Source: Octopus bimaculoides (lineage: Eukaryota). From it: a stretch of DNA of 33,868 nt. The stretch lies in NCBI RefSeq assembly GCF_001194135.2, contig NC_068992.1, forward strand, positions 58,432,516-58,466,383. Direction: 5' to 3'. Both the position numbers and the translations under genes were made by a program. The notes beneath the pieces are model-generated. The model saw only the letters and a list, made by a program, of their open reading frames with translations, was not told the origin of the DNA and did no database searches. How positions within the stretch are numbered: position 1 is the stretch's first letter; each line of letters starts with the position of its first letter. Shown piece after piece: positions 6,922-33,868 of the stretch.

Positions 6922-7074
6922 NNNNNNNNNNNNNNNNNNNNNNNNNNNNNNNNNNNNNNNNNNNNNNNNNNNNNNNNNNNNNNNNNNNNNNNNNNNNNNN
7001 NNNNNNNNNNNNNNNNNNNNNNNNNNNNNNNNNNNNNNNNNNNNNNNNNNNNNNTAACGTGCAAGTGGCTGAGC
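6922..7074. other. Assembly gap
   Basis: Run of N. Confidence 0.99.
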
Positions 7075-7363
7075 ACTCCACAGACAAGTGTACCCTTAAC
7101 GTAGTTCTCGGGGATATTCAGCGTGACACAGTGTGACAAGGCTGACCCTTTGAATTACAGGCACAACAGAAACAGGAAGTAAGAGTGAGAGAAAGTTGTG
7201 GTGAAAGAGTGCAGCAGGGTTCACCACCATCCCCTGCCGGCGCCACGTGGAGCTTTAGGTGTTTTCGCTCAATAAACATTCACAACGCCCGGTCTGGGAA
7301 TCGAAACCGCGATCCTATGACCGCGAGTCCGCTGCCCTAACCACCGGGCCATTGCGCCGCCAC
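7075..7363 (-). mobile_element. tRNA-derived SINE (tRNA-Arg-like head, resembles octopus OR-type SINEs), cut by gap
   Basis: Reverse complement of the element at 19226 and 31164; A box TGGCCCGGTGG, B box GGTTTCGATTCC. Confidence 0.85.
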
Positions 7364-12880: not shown

Positions 12881-13326
12881 AATCCGTGGCCCTAAATTAT
12901 AAATCGTGGAGGTGCGTGGTTTAATGATTGTAAGATTGTGGCTTCAATTCCAAGACCACACGAAGCTTTGTGTACTTGAGCAAAACACTTCATTTCATGG
13001 TACTCCAGTGCACTAAGCTTGTAAAAATGGGCAATCCTGCAATGGATTGGCATCTTGTCTGGTGTGGGGAGGTATATATACCAAAGAATCTGGGAAACCA
13101 GCCTTATAAGAGCCTATGGTTGAGGAAGGACCTTTGATCCTTTTTCTTCTTTCTTTTCAAGTTGCTAATTCCTAATTAATTACAAGAAAATGTGTAAGAA
13201 TTGTTTAGTTGATCATTACAGGAATACACATAAGGATTGCTTAGTTGCTAATTGTAAAACTATTATTAGTAAGGATTGTGAAAATACATATAAGGATCAC
13301 TTGGCTGTAAATTGCAAGAATATATA

Positions 13327-13527
13327 CTCTTTTACTTGTTTCAGTCTTTTGACTGTGGCCATGCTGGAGCACCGCCTTTAGTCGAGCAAATCGACCCCAA
13401 GACTTATTCTTTGAAAGCCTAGTACTTATTCTATCAGTCTCTTTTGTCGAACTGCTAAGTTATGGGGACATAAACATACCAACATCGGTTGTCAAGTGAT
13501 GTTGGGGAGACAAACACAGACACAAAA

Positions 13528-13564
<37 letters not shown>

Positions 13565-13727
13565 CGACGGGCTTCTTTCAGTTTCCGTCTACCAAATCCA
13601 CTCACAAGGCTTTGGTCGGCCCGAGGCTATAGTAGAAGATACTTGCCCAAGGTGCCACGCAGTGGGACTGAACCCGGGACCATGTGGTTGGTATGCAAGC
13701 TACTTACCACACAGCCACTCCTACGCC
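13327..13727 (-). mobile_element. SINE family B, near full length
   Basis: tRNA-like head at the right end, internal (TA)n, 3' tail matching 1-230. Confidence 0.8.
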
Positions 13728-16661
13728 TATATGTAAGGATTACTTAGTTGCTAAGTACAAAAATATATGTAAGGATTATTTAGTAGCTAATTCGATATGA
13801 TGTTCAATAAGGTTAACTTTAAAGCAGCAAATAGCCCAAATTAAAAACAAAAAAAAATTTAAATACTAGCATAAATTTAAATTGTAGCCCAATGTGGCCG
13901 ACCAGCTTGACACAATGTGAGAAGTCTGGATCTTTGAAAAGAGAGAACAAGGGAGTTGTAGTGGGCTGGTGCTTCATTTATCAATATTGAATTACAAATT
14001 CACTTCGGCAGGATACGAAGTCAGAGCGCAGAAGAACAAAAGACCTGGGTGAATGCAAAGCATTTTATCCAACGCTTTCACAATTCAGTCAGTTTGCTAC
14101 CTTATGATTTCCCTAAGTACCTTGATCAATTAGCTTAGAATGAACTTCATCTCTCGAGTTTCATGAAAGGTTATTGTATAAAGCTTCATACCACCTTTCA
14201 TAAAGAGAATGGAGTGCAATTTGTTTAAAAGTTTCATTTCAATTTGTTTCTTTTCTTTTCCGGTTCAAATTCCGCTGAGGTCGATTTTGCCTTTCATCCT
14301 TTGAGGGTCGATAAAATAAGTACCAGTTGAAAATTGGGGTCGAGATAATCAATTTGTTCTCTCTGTCTAAAATTGCTGGCCTTGTGCGAAAATTTGGAAC
14401 TCTTTCTCTCTCTTCTAACGTTTTTAGTTTGAATTCTAAGGTCTCAACATCGTCTTCCATTCCTCCAAAGATCAAAATCGTATTTGTGATGATTGTTACA
14501 TTCAAATTTTCTCCTCTTCTCTAATTTGTATCCTTGAACCAATGAAGGAAATCACTATTCGTCTCGTGTTATCTGTACTTCATTCTTTCGATGGAAGTAA
14601 CCAAAACCAGTGCTAGTCACGAGTTTGAGTAACACACGATATGGAATAACCCTGTTGACTATCTACAATTAAGTTAAGACTCAGGGGAGAAAGAGCACAA
14701 AGTGAGCAGTTGAGAAAGTTCAAGAATAACAGTGAACTTTAAAATAACCACCTGATAGATTTGGTAAACTGTATTAGGGGTGATGACAGCGATACAGAAA
14801 TGTTTAGAGGTGAAGGAGGAAGGATAAGGGAGAAAGAGATAAGATGCATGTTTGTTTCTGCAAGAAGTATTCTATAGAGTAACTATATGGTTACTATTGT
14901 TATTGAATGCTAAATGTAATATTACACACGTACACACACAGGTTTAGTGGATGAAAAGAGAAACAGAGCAATGTTTATTTTTAATCGACAGAAAATGACT
15001 CGAGGCACTCATCAAAGCTTAACATGCTATGCAGAAGTCTCGGCTGTAGAGACACTTTTGTAACTTTTCGCTGATAGATATACGGAAGATCAGACAAGAA
15101 AAGTAACAAATGACAATAAATGTATGAATATATAGGTTAAACTAAAGCGTTTGACCAGAGCACAAATACAAATGGAAAATAGTGTAATAGGTGTAAAGCA
15201 ACTTGCTCTGAACGAATATGGAAAAAAAAAATGTGCGCTCGCGATACATGTCTGAAAAGCCTTGGGTTTCGTTTCAAAAGTACTTGTTGAAATAGACAAG
15301 TATCAAGTTTCACATATGCTTGGAAACGAAAATCCAAGCGCTTGAGTAACGTTGTATTACAGTTCGTTATAACAATCTGCATGTGTGTGTGTGCGTGTTG
15401 AAGTGTAGCATTCATTGTCGTACAGTACACGTGGAAGTGACAAAATTGTGTTGACGTGAGAAAAGTTAAGTGATATATGAAGTTGGAGGTCGTAAAAGAG
15501 ATAGACGGTGATATGGGCAATCTGTCCGTGTGTTAAATTAGGAAAAGCATGAAAAAGATGCGTTTTTTGTGTGTTTATTATGCATATACTATCGATGTGA
15601 TGTGTTCATAACCATGTGTTTAAGTGAAACAGAAGGAAAGAATCTCTATGCAAGCTGAATCGTGAAATATTTATGAACATTTTCATGTTTGTAATATGTG
15701 CATACAAGGACTGTTGTTGCTTAGCAGCCAGTCAGCCTTGATCGAGCAGTCGTCTTAACCAAGTCGTCTCTATTGTGACCATCCCAGCTTTTTTTTTGCA
15801 TATTTATAGTTACATTAATCAACACGTCCTTCCTTTACGACGGTAGGGCGTGGTTTGAGGGAGATCTGGCCGTTATTTCTCGCAGGTCGAGCAATTATGT
15901 AGGAAGTGTGTATGTGTGTGAAAGTGATACGCGGTCTAGTTCTAAGAGACATGATGTTTTGCATATCGGAGACGAAAAGAGTGTCATTAATGAGATGTGA
16001 AAAAAAAAGTTAGAATGAAATGCGAGTACGACGTGTATTGAAAGCAAGGTGGGTCTATGAGTGTAATTGAGGGTATCACTAAAATGGGTATGTGGCTGGT
16101 GCGCCCCAGGACAGCTCTGATCGAGTGGTGTAAGATCAAAAACAGTCCTGTCGCGACTGTTTTTCCCTTTCCTACATGCAGAGAGGGGACCCAGGACTAT
16201 ACCATTCAACGAATTCATTTCTTAGACGATAATAAAGTGTGATTTGTGGGAGATTTGGCTGTTATTTCTAACAATCCGATCAACCACATAGAGGATCCCG
16301 CTTTGTCTTGGGTGGGTGTAAGTGAAATATGCACATGGGTACGTGTATGTGTGTTGTAAATAAGAGCAAGTTTGTGCAAGTGATGGGCGATTTGTTGTGA
16401 ATAAGATCAATCAGTGTGTGTGTGTAAATGATGTGTTGCGCGTCAAACCATGATTTTGTGCGCACAGACACATATATGGAAGAGAGGTGTCAATGTGACG
16501 CTGCAGTTCTTACGTAGAAATACAAATCATTTGTATTTCTTTTGTGTTTTGTTTTATTTTTAGCACAAAAAGAAAGGTTGTGAAGTTTATGCTTCAAACA
16601 GACTACAATAAATAAAATGAAACTTAATAAAGAAAAAAAAGATTTAAAAAAAAAAACTGAC

Positions 16662-19225: not shown

Positions 19226-19964
19226 GTGGAGGCGCAATGGCCCAGTGGTTAGGGCAGCGGACTCGCGGTCATAGGATCGCGGTTTCGATTACCAGACCGG
19301 GCATTGTGAGTGTTTATTGAGCGAAAACACCTAAAGCTCCACGAGGCTCCGGCAGGGGATGGTGGCGAACCCTGCTGTACTCTTTCACCACTACTTTCTC
19401 TCACTCTCACTTCCTGTTTCTGTTGTGCCTGTATTTAAAAGGGTCAGCCTTGTCACACTGTGTCACGCTGAATATCCCCGAGAACTACGTTAAGGGTACA
19501 CGTGTCTGTGGAATGTTCAGCCACTTGCACGTTAATTTCACGAGCAGGCTGTTCCGTTGATCGGATCAGCTGGAACCCTCGNNNNNNNNNNCAATGGCCC
19601 AGTGGTTAGGGCAGCGGACTCGCGGTCATAGGATCGCGGTTTCGATTACCAGACCGGGCATTGTGAGTGTTTATTGAGCGAAAACACCTAAAGCTCCACG
19701 AGGCTCCGGCAGGGGATGGTGGCGAACCCTGCTGTACTCTTTCACCACTACTTTCTCTCACTCTCACTTCCTGTTTCTGTTGTGCCTGTATTTAAAAGGG
19801 TCAGCCTTGTCACACTGTGTCACGCTGAATATCCCCGAGAACTACGTTAAGGGTACACGTGTCTGTGGAATGTTCAGCCACTTGCACGTTAATTTCACGA
19901 GCAGGCTGTTCCGTTGATCGGATCAGCTGGAACCCTCGATGTCGTAAGCGACAGAGTGCCAACC
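19226..19964 (+). mobile_element. tRNA-derived SINE, shown twice across a 10-N gap (probably one insertion)
   Basis: A box TGGCCCAGTGG; one 12-bp TSD aattgttacgta at 19214-19225 and 19965-19976 encloses both copies (19226-19581, 19592-19964). Confidence 0.9.
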
Positions 19965-22560: not shown

Positions 22561-23363
22561 AGCTTCCAGACATTTGAAGCTTTTTAAACATAACATACCT
22601 TCGACTTCAACAAACATACGTATATAAAGTGGCCGCCCTGTAACAGGTTGTACACTCCAACCTATATTACTGACTCGTTGTCCATACGAGGCCCAAATGT
22701 GTTATGGGGAACTTCGCGGATGAGTTTATAGTTGGAGGCGATGAAGGAGAGGTGAGCCGGCAATTTTAAGTCAGATGCTGCACGAGGACAGAGGCTGCCG
22801 AATCTCACAAAAAACTCCACATGCTGCCTCCAAGTATTGTGAAAAATGATGTTGCAGATGAATTGCGTAGATGAACGGATAGTGGCTTCTAGTTTGTCGA
22901 GATGTCCTAAATGGAGATAACATGGTGCGCTGCGCAGCGAAAGAAGAATTTGGCGGAGGTAACAAAAACCCTAGCCCTAACTCAAACACCGGGTGTGCGT
23001 ATTCTTTAGGTAGAACGATACAGTTCTTCAACATAAACAGGACTCGATAATAATTAATTAGGTGCAACATGTGGGCAATCTTTATTGGGTTCTCACGGTT
23101 GGATTCTGGGCATAAAAGGACAAATTCCTTTTTTTTTGTATCGGCCGCTGTTAAAACCGCAGCTAACTTTTGTCCTTGGAGTGTCATTCTCTTCCATCAA
23201 ATTGGGATGAAAGCACTGCGCCTCAGGAATGAACATCATGAGACAGAATGGTCAATCTAACGAATATCATGTGTGTTTGCTTTTAGTTTCTTTCTTTTCT
23301 CTTTTTTTTTGTTGCTATGTATAAGTACTGAATAAAAATATTGAAATAAGCTTCATTTCGTAG

Positions 23364-23398
<35 letters not shown>

Positions 23399-24164
23399 CA
23401 CATACATACACACGAATCAACAAAAACGTCTGTTTGTTCGCATGAGCTGCTAGAATTAGCGGGGGGAAATGTCTCAAATAATATCTTACATAATATNNNN
23501 NNNNNNTAATATCTTACATAATATCAAAAATAACAACGGATAATATAGTATGTATTAGATATAATGACTGAAAAAAAAGTTGGGAGATTAGTAATTTCTG
23601 GAATGTTTTTTGGTCATAAGTCTGCAGTAGCTTGGACTAAAGAAGAAGAACAACACACTCACGTGCGTTCATATCAGCATTGAAGTAAACGTAAATATTA
23701 CCATGTGTAAGAGAACATTAATTAGTAAAATTAAAGAGTTACGACTAATGACTCTTTTCCGGTACCTACTCCACCGATGTTGAAATCAATAATATTAATC
23801 CAATGTGTACATTTATTCAGAACCGATTTTTATCAACAGGGAGTCAAATTCAAAGTAATAGCGTTGAAGAGAGGAAATAAGTTGTTTAAAAAAGAATGAC
23901 GCTAAACAAACGCGATATTGCCAACTGTCTGACATTTTCATGAAGGATGGATATTAAAATGAACATAATAGATAAGAATCCCGCTTTTTGAAGATATATA
24001 AAATCAGTAAGCTTTTTGATTTTCATTTCTCGTGTGCTTATTTGCATAATTCGGTATATATACAATTATATATTTCTTCATGTTATATTTTTCTGCATTC
24101 CTCTGCCTCGCTCATCCAATCAAATATTGTGGACGATTTAAATTTCATTAATTATGGTGGAATT

Positions 24165-26567
24165 ATGAAGCTACAGACATTGCTAAGCACATATGTTTTA
24201 ACCGTCCTTCTACAACATTCAGACGAGGAACAGCTAAGTTCAGATTCCGATACGTATCTGACCGTACAACTTCTGGTAGATATGCAAAGTCCCGAACAGC
24301 AGAAAATGGATCGTTTTTTTAACATTGAAACTATGATTGATTTATCGACCAAGCAATTTTATTTTTTCGAAGATTCACTAACTCTGCGCCTTTACGTTCC
24401 CAACTCAAAGATCGGTTATCCCATTCAATTTTTGCAATTTGTCAACAACCAACCATACGAAATAGCTTACAATCAAACTTGTAATAAAAATAAAAATACC
24501 GAAAATTTCTGCAAGCAAACTAATGAAGGCAGCAAATCGTACAAAATCAAAGGGTACTGTTGTCCTGAAAGTGTTCAGATTCGTTGTATTCTCTATGATC
24601 CTTTATGGTATTCTATTAATACGCTCGACGACCCTGTAATCATTCAGGGTATAAGAATGGAGGTCTTAACAAAGGAAGCAGGCGCCGAAACAGATGATCT
24701 AAAGAAAAGAGTCGCCGAAAGCAGTCGTTTTCTTGTCAACGGCAAAACTATCGAGAAGGAAGACGATAAACTTTATTTCACGGCCCGCGTTCATAATCTG
24801 GCTAACTCTACTTCTTCTACTTGTAAAAACCCAATTTGTCCAAAGTTAAATTATTTATTGTTACCAATTTCAAGAACACCATCAAACAACAGTCTACAGA
24901 ACATGGAAGGTGTTCGTGAATACTTGCTTATCAAGAAGAAAGATTTTGATATAAAAGGAATACTGTGTGCTACAACTGGAATATCTATCGGTTCTGTTTA
25001 CAGAAAGAACGACAGATGTTCAGACACCTTTGTAAAAGCTTGCTCCAAAACTCAGCCTGACCAAAATGAGGAGATAAGAAACAGCGGTACCCATGCAAAG
25101 AAATCAAAATATTTTCTATCGAAGTTTGCCGCACCTGTAGCCCCTTATACTGGGAAAATTCCTGGCTGGAATTCTAATAAGACATTGTTATTTGTAGCAA
25201 ATACAAAGCGTTCAGATAAAGCGAAGCTGGAAATTATTATAAATCTCAATAAAAACCTTTTTCCTCTTGCAATTCCATTAATAGGTAAAGGTTCTATCAG
25301 AACTATATACAGCCATCCATTTACAGATTACGACAGCCAATACGAGTTTGGAATAAATATTCTTAACACAGGGCTAGTTACAGGAAACTTTAAAATATTA
25401 TTAAACTGTGAACCGAAAAAACAGTTCAAGACATTTATATTGATGCCATTTCAAGGACAAATAGTGAAATTTTATCAGAGTATTGATTTAACTATTGAAA
25501 GAGAAAGCGACAACACTACCTCTAAAAACGCCAATAAAAAACTGTTTCCATCGCAGTGTCGAATAGAATTATGGAACGAAGATGATAAAACAATGAATTC
25601 AAAAGAACTTATTTTAAAAGAAAACAAAACATGCATATGTTTAGTCGGTTGTAAATGTAGTTGTGATCTACCATACAAATGCGAATTGACAGACTCGAGA
25701 TCTACCACTCAATCTCCTGTCACAGAAGCTCCCCGTGACAAAACATGGGTTATTGTATGCACAATTTTACTTTTACTTATGCTACTCAATTTACTAAAAT
25801 TCACTTTTGGCTTTTGCTTCCCAATTCCCGTTGGTGAAGCAGGGCTGTGTGTTTTTATAAAAAGTAGCTATCAGTGTGAATATCTCGAAAAAGACCTTGA
25901 GCAAAAAGCAGTAGAGTACGATGAAGACGGTTACCCAGTGCATCCGAAAACTAAAGAAAGAGCGCGTGCTTTGCAGTACAAGACAATGGGTGCTCTGAAT
26001 TTATTATTCTTCTTTTACTTGCCATTTATTGTCTTGCATTGGCTTTTAGTACGAACGAAAATAAATAAAAAGAAAATGGATATATCGTGGGAAAAATTAG
26101 AAACAACTGTTGAAATGGTCAAAGAAGGCGACGAAAACTTTGGTTTGCACCGTACTTTGCGAAGAACATCATGTCAAACAATATCATCAGATCAGTCCGA
26201 ATTGCCGGATCACATCCAAGAAGAAAGGAATTGTATATTAGAGGAATATGGTAGAAGAATATATAGAGGGAAATGTCGTGAGGATTCAGTGTCAAAATCG
26301 TTGGAAAAGTCTCAGAAATTATCCATGAAGGATTGCCAACGAAAGAGTAAATTTAAAAGTGTGTTTGATAATTTTCGAAAAACAGAAAAAGAACCCAGTT
26401 CAATTGAAAGTTCAGACTGTCAGAAAAGTGTAGGGGATAATCTTTCAGCATGTCACATACCTGATATAACCCAATGTATTCGCGACGGTCATGAGAGTAG
26501 TTCATCATCTGAGCGTTCTTCGTGTTCAACACTCAAGAGAACTCCTATAAAAGATAAATGTTCTTGA
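24165..26567 (+). CDS. HAP2: HAP2/GCS1-family fusexin (gamete fusogen homolog), single-exon ORF, 800 aa from the first ATG
   Basis: Ordered motifs: VNNQPYE..C..C, GYCC..RCILYDPLWYS, DIKGILCATTGIS..DRCSDTFVKACSKTQ, KYFLSKF, domain III NTGLVTGNF..NC..QCRIELWNED, stem CICLVGCKCSC, TM at 25746-25817, long Ser/Lys/Cys-rich tail. The reading frame is open upstream to 23976 without an ATG, so the start is uncertain. Confidence 0.88.
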   Translation: MKLQTLLSTYVLTVLLQHSDEEQLSSDSDTYLTVQLLVDMQSPEQQKMDRFFNIETMIDLSTKQFYFFEDSLTLRLYVPNSKIGYPIQFLQFVNNQPYEIAYNQTCNKNKNTENFCKQTNEGSKSYKIKGYCCPESVQIRCILYDPLWYSINTLDDPVIIQGIRMEVLTKEAGAETDDLKKRVAESSRFLVNGKTIEKEDDKLYFTARVHNLANSTSSTCKNPICPKLNYLLLPISRTPSNNSLQNMEGVREYLLIKKKDFDIKGILCATTGISIGSVYRKNDRCSDTFVKACSKTQPDQNEEIRNSGTHAKKSKYFLSKFAAPVAPYTGKIPGWNSNKTLLFVANTKRSDKAKLEIIINLNKNLFPLAIPLIGKGSIRTIYSHPFTDYDSQYEFGINILNTGLVTGNFKILLNCEPKKQFKTFILMPFQGQIVKFYQSIDLTIERESDNTTSKNANKKLFPSQCRIELWNEDDKTMNSKELILKENKTCICLVGCKCSCDLPYKCELTDSRSTTQSPVTEAPRDKTWVIVCTILLLLMLLNLLKFTFGFCFPIPVGEAGLCVFIKSSYQCEYLEKDLEQKAVEYDEDGYPVHPKTKERARALQYKTMGALNLLFFFYLPFIVLHWLLVRTKINKKKMDISWEKLETTVEMVKEGDENFGLHRTLRRTSCQTISSDQSELPDHIQEERNCILEEYGRRIYRGKCREDSVSKSLEKSQKLSMKDCQRKSKFKSVFDNFRKTEKEPSSIESSDCQKSVGDNLSACHIPDITQCIRDGHESSSSSERSSCSTLKRTPIKDKCS

Positions 26568-27200
26568 ATTTCATTGGCAGAATTTGTAAAACAGTTTAAT
26601 ATAAAAGATGCCATTGAAAATATTTGTAAATCTTGGAGGAAAGTGACAACCTGCAACATATTTTACCATTGTTCATTGGTAGAATTTGTGAACCTGTTTA
26701 ATATATCAAAAGAAAAAAAAACGCCATTGAAAATATTCTTGAATCGTGGGGAAAAGTGAAAACCAACATATTTGACCTCAGTGTGCTTAATATTTCACTG
26801 ACACACTGACCAGAGGAATTTTTTTGAAGAAATACTTAACATTAGAATAGAGCTTGGTTTCGTAAAAATAGACGATATAGATGTTGACGATTTATTTGAA
26901 TCCTATTCGAAAGGACTAACTCTCAGGACATTCTTAATGTAGATCAACAAGCGGGCATACAACGAAGACGAAACTGAGTCGATAAAATGTACCACAAATT
27001 AAAGGAGTGACTAAAATAATTTTGTGTTATGTTTCTCGAATATGAAATTTAAACTATTTGTGATGAATATCGATCCTAACGAACTTCATAACTATAGACA
27101 GTTACAGGCAAGGGCAGCGAAAGGAAAATATATTAATGCGTATCAAATTACCATGGTTAAGTATTTTTATTTTTTCAAAGGGAAAAATTCGTGAAAAGAT
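26568..27200 (+). mobile_element. pogo/Tigger-type transposase C-terminal relic
   Basis: LAEFVKQFNIKDAIENICKSWRKVT (DDE_1 C-terminal pattern), then EEILNIRIELGFVKIDDIDVDDLFESY; ~90-bp internal duplication (about 26570-26660 vs 26674-26770). Confidence 0.6.
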
Positions 27201-27977
27201 TATTTTCCGACGTTTTTATGTAGACTGCAGTAAAACAATGTTGCATTTCCAATAAATTGTTGAATACTAAACACATTTTCACCTGTCCTTATTACATTTT
27301 CTTCTGTAAGGATAAAACATAAATGATAATATAGTGATCAAGTGTTTTCACACATATACACACGTGCACACTCATACATACATGATTATAATACATTTAA
27401 AAGTAGACAAGGAATATAATGAATAAATCTAGAATTTTATACATTTGAATAAGTCTGCTGATTACATTCGAAAGTATATATGCATACTGACATGCGCACA
27501 CACACACCCCCACACACACATGCACATACATATATGCACTGTGGTTGTCGACTTGTAGATGAATATGACCATCTGTGACAAATGATCCTTTCCTAGATCT
27601 TAATGACAATGGTTATCAGCAATACCCGTGCTGAAATCTAAAGTCAATAACAGCTTGCACAACACTGCTACGACTCCCACCTACAAAGCCAAGTAGTCTA
27701 GAAACAAGCAAGAACAACATCTCTTGCTTCGGAATTTCTTTCTCATAGAGTGATGTCTAAACAAAGAAAAGGAGGATCTCACTCCCAGTTATTGGATAGC
27801 CTTAACTCTATTGAGTTCATCCGTCCTTTCACTGGATTTGTTTTTCGTCCTGCAGAGTGTTCCCTGCAAACAGCCCTCCTTACCAAGCATGCTTTGTAGG
27901 GTTGCCGGCCCGACCATGCGACAGGTTGTATTGGTTACATGTTACTAGTAGCACCACGAGTGACCTGACAACATCTG

Positions 27978-31163: not shown

Positions 31164-31535
31164 AGTGGAGGCGCAATGGCCTAGTGGTTAGGGCAGCGGA
31201 CTCGCAGGCATAGGATCGCGGTTTCGATTCCCAGAGCGGGCGTTGTGAGTGTTTATTGAGCGAAAACACCTAAAGCTCCACGAGGCTGCGGCAGGGGATG
31301 GTAGCGAACCCTGCTGTACTCTTCCACCACAACTTTCTCTCACTCTTACTTCCTGTTTCTGTTATGTCTGTAATTCAAAAGGTCAGCCTTGTCACGCTGA
31401 ATATCCCCGAGAACTGCGTTAAGGGTACACGTGTCTGTGGAGTGCTCAGCCACTTGCACGTTAATTTCACGAGCAGGCTGTTCCGTTGATTGGATCAACT
31501 GGAACCCTCGACGTCGTAAGCGACGGAGTGCCAAC
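31164..31535 (+). mobile_element. tRNA-derived SINE (same family as 19226), full length with TSD
   Basis: A and B boxes; 11-bp TSD acacctctgga at 31153-31163 and 31536-31546. Confidence 0.9.
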
Positions 31536-32730: not shown

Positions 32731-33767
32731 AATAACGATCATTATAACATGCGTTTCCATTAATGAAATCGATTTCAAGTATATGTGATTCTCGTTACTA
32801 CTACGTTATAGCCCGGGTCCGTATTAATGATGGTAACAAGTTGACGAGAGCTCAAGAGAGTTAAAATGCGTGAGAATAAAAACAATTCCTATGGGCTTGT
32901 AAATATGAGGTTGAGTTAGTGTGTGCTTGTAGTTAGATGTGTGAACAAGCCTCTTCAGCACTTAGGTGTTTGATGCGTGTGCATGTGCATGACTACTTTG
33001 TAGATGCACACACCTAAGTGTGTACAAATATTCATCTAAAGGGAGGTAATATTTGTCCCCACTTAAACGTGGGTGTTCTGTTAGAACAAAGTATGCTGTG
33101 GTAATTATCACGAGATAAACTCTCATATTGGCTTTTGCACTCTTGTATATATTGCCATCTCTAGCGAGACCACCATATCACGTGATTTTGACCTTCTTTG
33201 ATCATGTCAATGATGGACACTCGACCGCTAGAAATAGCAGCTATTCATCTCTCCATCAGAGATATATAGAATAACGGTGCCAGAACAGGCGCTAGTGTCA
33301 CGATTAGCCAGTGAGCTTGTTAAAAAATATATATTAATGACAGACGCACCATTAATACAGAGAGGTATCCTCAGTTAAACGTGGATGTCCTGTTAGAACA
33401 AACTACACTGCGGTAATGACCACGAGAGAAACTCGTATACTGGCTTTATTGTTTATATAGCTAGCGTAGAGATAAATCTCCGCCACCTCCTATGCTGAAA
33501 CCGCCAGATAACGTGGTCTAAAGAATCTCAACGGGCGAATCTATGGGGCAGCTTACAAATTTTTGCTGTGCCGCTAATAGCTTGGATTTGGAGGAAGCAC
33601 GTTTGTGTCTTTTGGTCTTTCTTAGAAAATATTAACATTTCTGGGGCTTTGCGCAAATCCGTATTATGTATGTCTCTTCTGTTTTTTTAATTATTACAAA
33701 TCTTCCACTGAGGAGGGAGCCGGTTTCCAACAAAGATGTATGTATGTATGTATGTACGTATGTTTGT

Positions 33768-33868
33768 AGCTTGCTTACCAACCACATCGTTCTGGGTTCA
33801 GTCCCACTGGGGCAAGTGTTTTCTACTATAGCCTTGGGCCGACCAAAGCCTTGTGAGTGGAATTGGTA
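33768..33868 (+). mobile_element. SINE family B head (cut by window edge)
   Basis: agcttgcttaccaaccacatcgttctgggttcagtcccactggggcaagtg..ccgaccaaagccttgtgagtgg. Confidence 0.7.

Follow-up and report, generated by a model that had tools for sequence, protein, structure and literature searches.

An octopus homologue of the gamete fusogen HAP2/GCS1 with a seven-residue c-d connection in place of the fusion loops

HAP2 (GCS1) is the only established gamete fusogen of eukaryotes, and its mechanism has been modelled on viral class II proteins, with the loops of the c-d connection inserting into the target membrane. Here we describe a HAP2/GCS1 homologue encoded in a stretch of 33,868 nucleotides of Octopus bimaculoides DNA (NCBI RefSeq assembly GCF_001194135.2, contig NC_068992.1, positions 58,432,516 to 58,466,383 of the forward strand), hereafter called the window, whose positions are used throughout; all the features of the gene lie on the + strand. 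The gene is a complete single-exon coding sequence (CDS) of 800 amino acids (aa) and a stop codon at 24165..26567, and the c-d connection of domain II that it encodes consists of only seven residues, from which fusion loops 1 and 2, the conserved arginine and one pair of cysteines are missing. No existing database record was found for this exact 800-aa protein.

Identification of the octopus HAP2 gene

The sole long open reading frame (ORF) of the window extends from 23988 to 26567, and its first ATG, after an upstream stop, is at 24165. The translated ORF matched the Pfam family PF10699 (HAP2-GCS1) with 68.7 bits and an E-value of 5e-19 (the gathering cut-off is 27.4 bits), the match covering aa 165-547 of the ORF and positions 120-469 of the 515 of the profile. 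A profile built from A3, an eight-sequence HAP2 alignment of the octopus ORF and seven relatives, matched all the solved HAP2s, namely those of T. cruzi (5OW4), C. merolae (7S0K), Chlamydomonas (6E18, 6DBS and 5MF1) and Arabidopsis (5OW3), with E-values from 1e-35 to 1e-51.

The predicted fold was also compared with known structures. An AlphaFold2 (AF2) model of the ectodomain, obtained from a 16-sequence alignment, is of moderate confidence (mean predicted local distance difference test, pLDDT, 69.7; predicted template modelling score, pTM, 0.53), and the top eight PDB chains that Foldseek returned for it were all HAP2 (E 2e-20 to 4e-17). The best match was 7S0K (E 2.4e-20), with 5OW3, 6DBS, 6E18 and 5MF1 also among the best HAP2 structures; archaeal Fsx1, nematode EFF-1 and the class II proteins (Gc, E1 and E) of bunyaviruses, alphaviruses and flaviviruses followed. 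A first full-length model from eight sequences (pLDDT 55.5) was too poor for details of the tip, and the Foldseek ranking was unchanged with it. By profile match and predicted fold, the octopus ORF is a member of the HAP2/GCS1 family by descent and a class II fusogen homologue. The likeness to the canonical HAP2/GCS1 of Chlamydomonas, Arabidopsis, T. cruzi, C. merolae and animals extends along the whole ectodomain and includes the three cysteines and the glutamine of PF10699, the stem and the transmembrane (TM) segment.

The c-d connection of domain II

The stretch 24552..24611 translates to GYCCPESVQIRCILYDPLWY (aa 130-149), in which strand c (GYCC) is followed by a stub of seven residues, PESVQIR, and by strand d (CILYDPLWY). 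Translation, alignment and a motif scan identify this stub (24564..24584) as the sole remnant of the c-d 'fusion loop' connection; it is bounded by the CC pair of strand c (24558-24563) and by the next cysteine (24585-24587), and among its residues there are two aliphatic ones (V137 and I139) but neither cysteines nor aromatics. In the second AF2 model the stub forms a tight beta-hairpin, with a strand at 131-133, a four-residue turn at P134-V137 and another strand at 138-144, all with a pLDDT of about 67-85.

In A3 the difference from other HAP2s appears as a single clean gap of about 31 columns, from the CC of strand c to the cysteine that opens strand d, which is present in the octopus sequence and in P0002, a 1163-aa protein described below. 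According to an anchored motif scan, the two Octopus sequences (O. bimaculoides and O. vulgaris) and P0002 have a connection of 7 aa, with no extra cysteine and no loop arginine, whereas eleven other HAP2 matches have 30-84 aa with two extra cysteines and an arginine of the R(G/S)GQ(D/N)C type, and the four solved HAP2s have 28-44 aa with two to four extra cysteines and the loop arginine. The HAP2s with 28-84 aa include the solved structures from plant, alga and trypanosome, as well as sequences of two bivalves, two nemerteans, arachnids, a beetle and a dinoflagellate.

A comparison of 38 HAP2s from four kingdoms found nine invariant residues at the tip, which are seven cysteines, a glutamate of strand b and an arginine of the c-d connection (PMC6089408). 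Five of the seven cysteines of the b-d-c region are present in the octopus, and the two that lie within the c-d connection (Cys7 and Cys8) are missing from the octopus, O. vulgaris and P0002. The conserved c-d arginine (R185 in Chlamydomonas) is absent together with the whole R(G/S)GQ(D/N)C segment, and the strand-b glutamate (E126 in Chlamydomonas) is kept in both Octopus species as E99 in the motif QPYE. Unlike canonical HAP2s, the octopus protein has neither the insertion helix nor aromatic residues here, and the hydrophobic or amphipathic membrane-insertion motif is not found in the connection. The octopus HAP2 fails three structural hallmarks of a canonical HAP2 fusogen. The parity of the cysteines that are left, five in the b-d-c region and three in the i-j region, is consistent with the clean loss of one disulfide.

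Most of this agrees with an earlier note on the window, made from the sequence alone, which had read seven residues without an aromatic between CC and the next cysteine, and whose Arabidopsis string (PICC...CLRF) is an exact match to residues 147-182 of 5OW3. Its statement that the extra cysteines and the loop arginine had gone while the glutamate of QPYE remained is borne out, but the stub does hold an arginine. This residue, R140, is the last of the stub and is not equivalent to the lost one, since it aligns with the histidine of a conserved (S/T)AHC motif and not with the loop arginine. The note had also proposed comparing animal, plant and protist HAP2s and other molluscs: other animal HAP2s are not equally short, having 31-84 aa here and about 1,700 in the bee and wasp models mentioned below, the bivalves carry a long c-d loop, and the stub was found only in Octopus and P0002. 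Nor has a hydrophobic loop of normal length taken the place of the c-d loop elsewhere at the tip, where the b-c connection is polar and has the usual length.

In the tip of P0002 the strand-b glutamate is replaced by asparagine (RPYN) and a histidine stands before the strand-d cysteine, where the octopus has a glutamate and an arginine, respectively. This possible co-variation of Glu/Arg with Asn/His suggests that the salt bridge may have been relocated, with R140 and E99 as the candidate pair.

The c-d connection of animals spans from 7 to about 1,700 residues, the upper end being taken from gene models. In bees and wasps (P0015 of Megachile and P0026 of Vespa crabro, both unverified models) some 1,700 aa rich in Ser, Lys, Glu and Asn lie between CCSC and RGGQDC, and an unnamed insect-like contig (P0012) has 158 aa at this place. 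The diversity of HAP2 tips, including large deletions of variable region 3 in animals, has already been described (PMC6089408). The direction of change in the octopus was thus already known, and what is new is its extent, with both loops, the invariant arginine and a conserved, putative disulfide gone.

The remainder of the domain II tip

Strand b (FVNNQPYE, 24438..24461) aligns with VNNK(A/P)YE of other HAP2s and ends with the conserved E99, whose codon is at 24459-24461. It is followed by the b-c connection (24462..24551). This connection has two conserved cysteines and many Lys, Asn and Glu residues and is the fastest-diverging stretch of the protein: 13 of 28 positions differ between the two Octopus species, and aa 101-120 form the most variable 20-aa window of the protein (9/20 differ from O. 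vulgaris). Strand c, the stub and strand d (aa 129-163) show a single change in the same comparison. Just after strand b, variable region 1 has been trimmed to 6 residues versus 13 in bivalves and nemerteans, and at aa 119-127 the AF2 pLDDT falls below 50.

A compensating loop at the tip was considered and rejected, the b-c connection being neither longer nor more hydrophobic than in other animals. This connection (aa 100-129) is a candidate for a surface of species specificity or of positive selection.

The only clade-specific hydrophobic insertion of the protein is PVAPYTGKIPGW (aa 324-335, 25134..25169), which in A3 takes up 11 columns that six other animals do not have. It is hydrophobic and aromatic, near-identical in O. 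vulgaris, has a counterpart (SPYATFIPSC) in P0002 and is absent from the other animals. The insertion falls between strands k and l, as does a long loop of Plasmodium HAP2 (PMC6170185), and is probably far from the apex of domain II.

Relatives and age of the deletion

In an index of 5.8 billion sequences the sole close relative of the octopus protein was P0001 of O. vulgaris, with 561 aa and 81% identity. The corresponding O. vulgaris locus (L001, OX597825.1, 9113-11686) contains a full ORF of 798 codons that is 82% identical to the octopus ORF. The public gene model P0001 starts at an internal methionine and is truncated at the N-terminus; the genomic ORF extends it by a signal peptide and the complete tip of domain II. 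Word-indexed protein searches for further cephalopod orthologues gave only O. vulgaris or the query itself, and no mention of HAP2 in cephalopods was found in the literature searched.

When 1.84 billion representatives were scanned exhaustively with HMMER, only 20 proteins were retrieved. The next-best match was P0002 (32% identical, E 8e-72, encoded at 496-3987 of L002), whose source are near-identical contigs of about 4.2 kb reported from several ENA sequencing runs, of which three were retrieved; with their long flanks resembling untranslated regions (UTRs), these contigs look like transcripts. The other matches came from bivalves (Solemya and Pecten), nemerteans (Lineus and Tubulanus), arachnids, insects, a sponge, a dinoflagellate and unnamed contigs.

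The O. vulgaris assembly encodes GYCCPESVQIRCIFYDPLWY, and its DNA is identical to that of O. bimaculoides across the stub. P0002 carries GFCC-PHVLEAH-CFMYDPVWY, that is, a stub of equal length and different sequence. Moreover the octopus and P0002 have in common the loss of the N-terminal cysteine pair, the insertion after KYFLSKFA and an insertion in domain III, and they were sisters in all 500 bootstrap replicates of a neighbour-joining tree, both on long branches. Because the stub and these further derived characters are common to both and the two are sisters in the tree, the deletion predates the split between octopus and P0002. The presence of the stub in O. vulgaris and in P0002 also makes it an old lineage trait and not an assembly error; an artefact of assembly was ruled out by the same stub in O. 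vulgaris and by the equally short stub on the P0002 contigs.

Exon structure of the HAP2 genes and the source of the deletion

The octopus HAP2 CDS has no introns in either Octopus species, whereas the gene of Pecten maximus covers 14 kb with at least 14 coding exons and that of Solemya velum covers 45 kb with at least 18 (tblastn; loci L005 and L006). The exon boundaries are shared between Pecten and Solemya, in agreement with the intron conservation that Fedry et al. 2018 (PMC6089408) described. In both bivalves a single exon carries the entire c-d connection together with strand c before it and the beginning of strand d after it, while strand b and the b-c connection sit on the preceding exon; the introns that flank the c/c-d/d exon are among those absent in the octopus. 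In Solemya this exon corresponds to aa 153-202 (GFCC...DPVW), and its AG and GT boundaries were confirmed.

The simplest reading of this is that an old retroposition replaced the multi-exon gene, and the octopus gene looks like a retrogene in that it is without all the coding introns which are conserved between the two distant bivalves. We identified neither a remnant of poly(A) nor a duplication of the target site nor a parental copy, although no search aimed at these was made when the sequence downstream of the stop was read; the event, if real, is too old for such marks. Both ends of the c/c-d/d exon are still present in the octopus, so the deletion was internal to this exon and cannot have come about by exon skipping before retroposition.

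The earlier note had called the change a clean in-frame loss, and this holds as a description of the alignment; the event itself is ancient and not recent, and it was not exon skipping. No sequence is missing at the stub, where the contigs of several sequencing runs bear out both assemblies.

Selection on the reading frame

The CDSs of O. bimaculoides and O. vulgaris have 208 differences in 2,397 aligned sites (8.7%; dS about 0.10) and no stop codon. When substitutions of the same number and spectrum were placed randomly in the sequence, a mean of 10.6 stops resulted and 0 of 20,000 replicates were stop-free. Moreover the CDS has two indels, both of 3 nt, whereas 2,649 nt of the flanks contain 22 such events. 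The reading frame is maintained by selection, and the stop-codon simulation together with the indel deficit rules out a pseudogene.

The ratio of nonsynonymous to synonymous changes (dN/dS, Nei-Gojobori, for the two Octopus sequences) is 0.90 for the whole CDS, 0.30 for the signal peptide and N-terminus, 0.42 for the TM segment and juxtamembrane region (aa 526-635) and 1.06 for the ectodomain, with values above 1.3 in aa 151-525. Much of the ectodomain changes either freely or adaptively, two options that cannot be separated with two sequences. An argument for positive selection from a dN higher than the divergence of the immediate flanks was dropped, as the distant flanks diverge as much as the CDS. 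The 1.3 kb or so on each side of the gene (22772-24164 and 26568-27905) diverge by 5.6-5.9%, less than the CDS or the farther flanks (about 9-11%), and may be conserved UTR or regulatory DNA.

In view of these results we consider it highly improbable that the stub is an artefact or the sign of a dying gene, whether by collapse of the assembly or as a processed pseudogene that drifts neutrally. Such an origin would be in line with the intron-less CDS, with a CDS divergence that equals or exceeds that of the flanking DNA and with an O. vulgaris annotation that gives only a truncated 561-aa product. It is opposed by the recovery of the same stub from two independent assemblies and of a 7-aa stub of other sequence from the contigs of several runs, by ORFs of 800 and 798 codons that stay intact despite the 208 substitutions, by a ten-fold deficit of indels in the CDS, all of them in frame, and by the low dN/dS (0.3-0.4) of the N-terminus and the TM region.

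Possible function of the octopus HAP2

The importance of the missing parts has been studied in other organisms. In Chlamydomonas HAP2 the changes R185A and R185Q and the TRA deletion gave non-functional proteins, fusion and liposome binding being abolished (PMC5332557). Arg185 pairs there with Glu126 of strand b (PMC5332557) and receives a hydrogen bond from Gln379, and through these two residues it organises the i-j loop (PMC5332557, PMC6170185). Deletion of the alphaF helix of the Arabidopsis protein also gave a non-functional HAP2 (PMC6089408). Fusion in algae and plants is likewise abolished by mutation of the invariant arginine and cysteines of the region. Since loss of the arginine or of the helix abolishes fusion in Chlamydomonas and Arabidopsis, canonical insertion into the egg membrane is most likely impossible for the octopus HAP2.

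We tentatively suggest, with a confidence somewhat short of even, that the octopus HAP2 is a membrane-anchored class II protein of the gamete surface, whose polar tip would engage the partner gamete by protein contacts and whose fold-back would do the pulling. The c-d connection of domain II was removed in frame in the lineage leading to octopus and P0002. The remodelled polar tip would then contact the partner gamete, either through a receptor or partner protein or through HAP2 in trans as in EFF-1, and the fold-back of domain III and the stem would supply the pulling force. The fold-back apparatus, composed of domain III, the stem, the TM segment and the tail motifs, is conserved in the octopus protein.

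EFF-1 has an acidic c-d loop that does not insert, and EFF-1 and AFF-1 are required in both of the fusing membranes (PMC8784728, PMC8777248). Like the octopus HAP2 they have a class II fold, their tip is polar or acidic and does not insert, and the predicted turn of the octopus stub is also acidic (E135). However, the octopus protein does not belong to the FF family, as it has no FF match in Pfam and its Foldseek E-value is 2.5e-10 for EFF-1 versus 2.4e-20 for HAP2. Moreover the c-d loop of EFF-1 is of normal length with a changed chemistry, whereas the octopus HAP2 is essentially loop-less. The resemblance is, at most, one of function.

Several points weigh against a tip that acts by protein contacts. 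To our knowledge, HAP2 function has been demonstrated in no bilaterian, and the octopus HAP2 is known here from its sequence and its predicted fold, in which the tip is only moderately confident. A dN/dS near 1 in the ectodomain would be equally expected under relaxed constraint. A second, canonical HAP2 may exist elsewhere in cephalopod genomes. The aliphatic residues of the stub, V137 and I139, are at or beside the predicted turn, and direct insertion through them may be possible. In addition, T. cruzi HAP2 works with small loops (PMC6089408).

In an alternative explanation the octopus HAP2 has remained a unilateral fusogen and inserts by a minimal motif, formed by V137 and I139 of the c-d turn and by F115 and Y126 of the b-c connection, so that the tips of the trimer would grip the egg membrane. 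HAP2 tips are extremely plastic, and that of T. cruzi, the most reduced described so far, consists of three small loops without an amphipathic helix (PMC6089408). Two aliphatic residues are kept in both types of stub (SVQI in the octopus, HVLE in P0002), within the tip conservation is highest in the stub and strand d, and the fold-back parts (domain III, the cysteine motif of the stem, the TM segment and the tail motifs) are conserved. Nevertheless the T. cruzi c-d connection still has 31 aa, with four cysteines and the conserved arginine, whereas in the octopus the stub is without aromatic residues and its predicted turn is acidic (E135). The b-c connection, rich in Lys, Asn and Glu and differing at so many positions between the Octopus species, is unlike a lipid-binding surface, and the arginine was needed for liposome binding in Chlamydomonas (PMC5332557). 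For these reasons we regard a unilateral fusogen of this kind as unlikely.

It is also conceivable, although rather doubtful, that the protein is no longer a fusogen and that after retroposition and loop loss it took up an adhesion, recognition or somatic role, the merger of the membranes being done by something else. An ectodomain dN/dS of about 1, with stretches above 1.3 and a hypervariable tip loop, is what is seen in gamete recognition proteins. Residues that are invariant across 38 HAP2s have been lost (PMC6089408), the strand-b glutamate is lost as well in P0002, and the octopus is without the C-terminal tail domain common to P0002, bivalves and nemerteans. Furthermore HAP2 has been lost outright from most bilaterians, so that animals must possess other means of fusion (PMC2766252). 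On the other side, the parts of class II fold-back (domain III, stem, TM segment and juxtamembrane motifs) are conserved as far as P0002 and other phyla, and a protein of adhesion only has no obvious need of them.

If the octopus HAP2 does act at the gamete surface through protein contacts, a more complete and speculative proposal can be made, which taken as a whole we hold to be doubtful: that the cephalopod HAP2 is a loop-less class II gamete fusogen, derived from a retrogene by loss of both loops, the arginine and the disulfide at a time earlier than a genus-level divergence, which would fuse membranes in trans like EFF-1 or anchored to a receptor, with the b-c loop setting the species specificity. 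If this were true, insertion of the c-d loops would be dispensable for fusion of the HAP2 type, and unilateral and bilateral modes would be linked within one family. The octopus HAP2 is a natural deletion mutant with which the action of HAP2 in the absence of membrane insertion, bilaterally or via a partner, can be tested, a matter of open controversy. It also bears on the role, if any, of HAP2 in bilaterians and provides the reproductive biology of cephalopods with a candidate fast-evolving sperm-egg protein.

Other features of the protein

As read from the sequence and the alignment, the octopus HAP2 is composed of a signal peptide, an ectodomain with domains in the order I-II-III, a cysteine-rich stem, one TM segment and a cytoplasmic tail. 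The predicted signal peptide, MKLQTLLSTYVLTVLLQ (24165..24215), is the hydrophobic N-terminus after the first ATG, as read from the sequence, and is identical in O. vulgaris. The N-terminal cysteine pair of canonical HAP2s is absent in the octopus.

The HAP2-GCS1 signature and i-j loop region, CATTGISIGSVYRKNDRCSDTFVKACSKTQP (24966..25058), keeps its three cysteines and the conserved glutamine, whose equivalent in Chlamydomonas is Gln379, the invariant columns of A3 in this region being C268, C285, C293, Q297 and P298. The stem contains the motif CICLVGCKCSC (25632..25664), with C490, C492, C498 and C500 invariant in A3. The TM segment (25746..25820) was recognized as a hydrophobic run and corresponds to a helix at 527-551 in the first AF2 model.

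The cytoplasmic region at 25917..26051 comprises the conserved motif YDEDGYPVHP and a second hydrophobic segment, MGALNLLFFFYLPFIVLHWLLV. Both are common to the HAP2s of bivalves, nemerteans and a spider in A3, a likeness of the octopus protein to animal HAP2s in particular, and the region holds stretches of 20 and 23 residues that are identical in O. vulgaris. The C-terminal tail domain (YYN...SPFL.NS...FSLCG...YPCLN) that P0002, bivalves and nemerteans have in common (P0002, P0003, P0004, P0014 and P0017) left no trace anywhere in the window, and aa 800 is the last residue of the octopus protein.

Other sequences in the window

Outside the HAP2 gene, the window consists of AT-rich non-coding DNA that is full of repeats and contains four runs of N. 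Pfam gave no match for the ten other ORFs of at least 100 aa in the window or for the region just downstream of the HAP2 stop, and no tRNA genes were found in the window with ARAGORN.

Two families of repeats were observed. A unit of 357 bp occurs as a tandem pair at 19233-19938, with a gap of 10 N between the copies, and again at 7055-7363 and 31165-31531, with several copies in the O. vulgaris locus. It is probably a family of short interspersed nuclear elements (SINEs), as its consensus starts with a tRNA-like stretch, for which ARAGORN made no tRNA call. The second interspersed family is found at 1-217, 2589-2920, 13326-13731 and 33766-33868, and its copies are 80-94% identical to multiple sites of the O. 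vulgaris locus.

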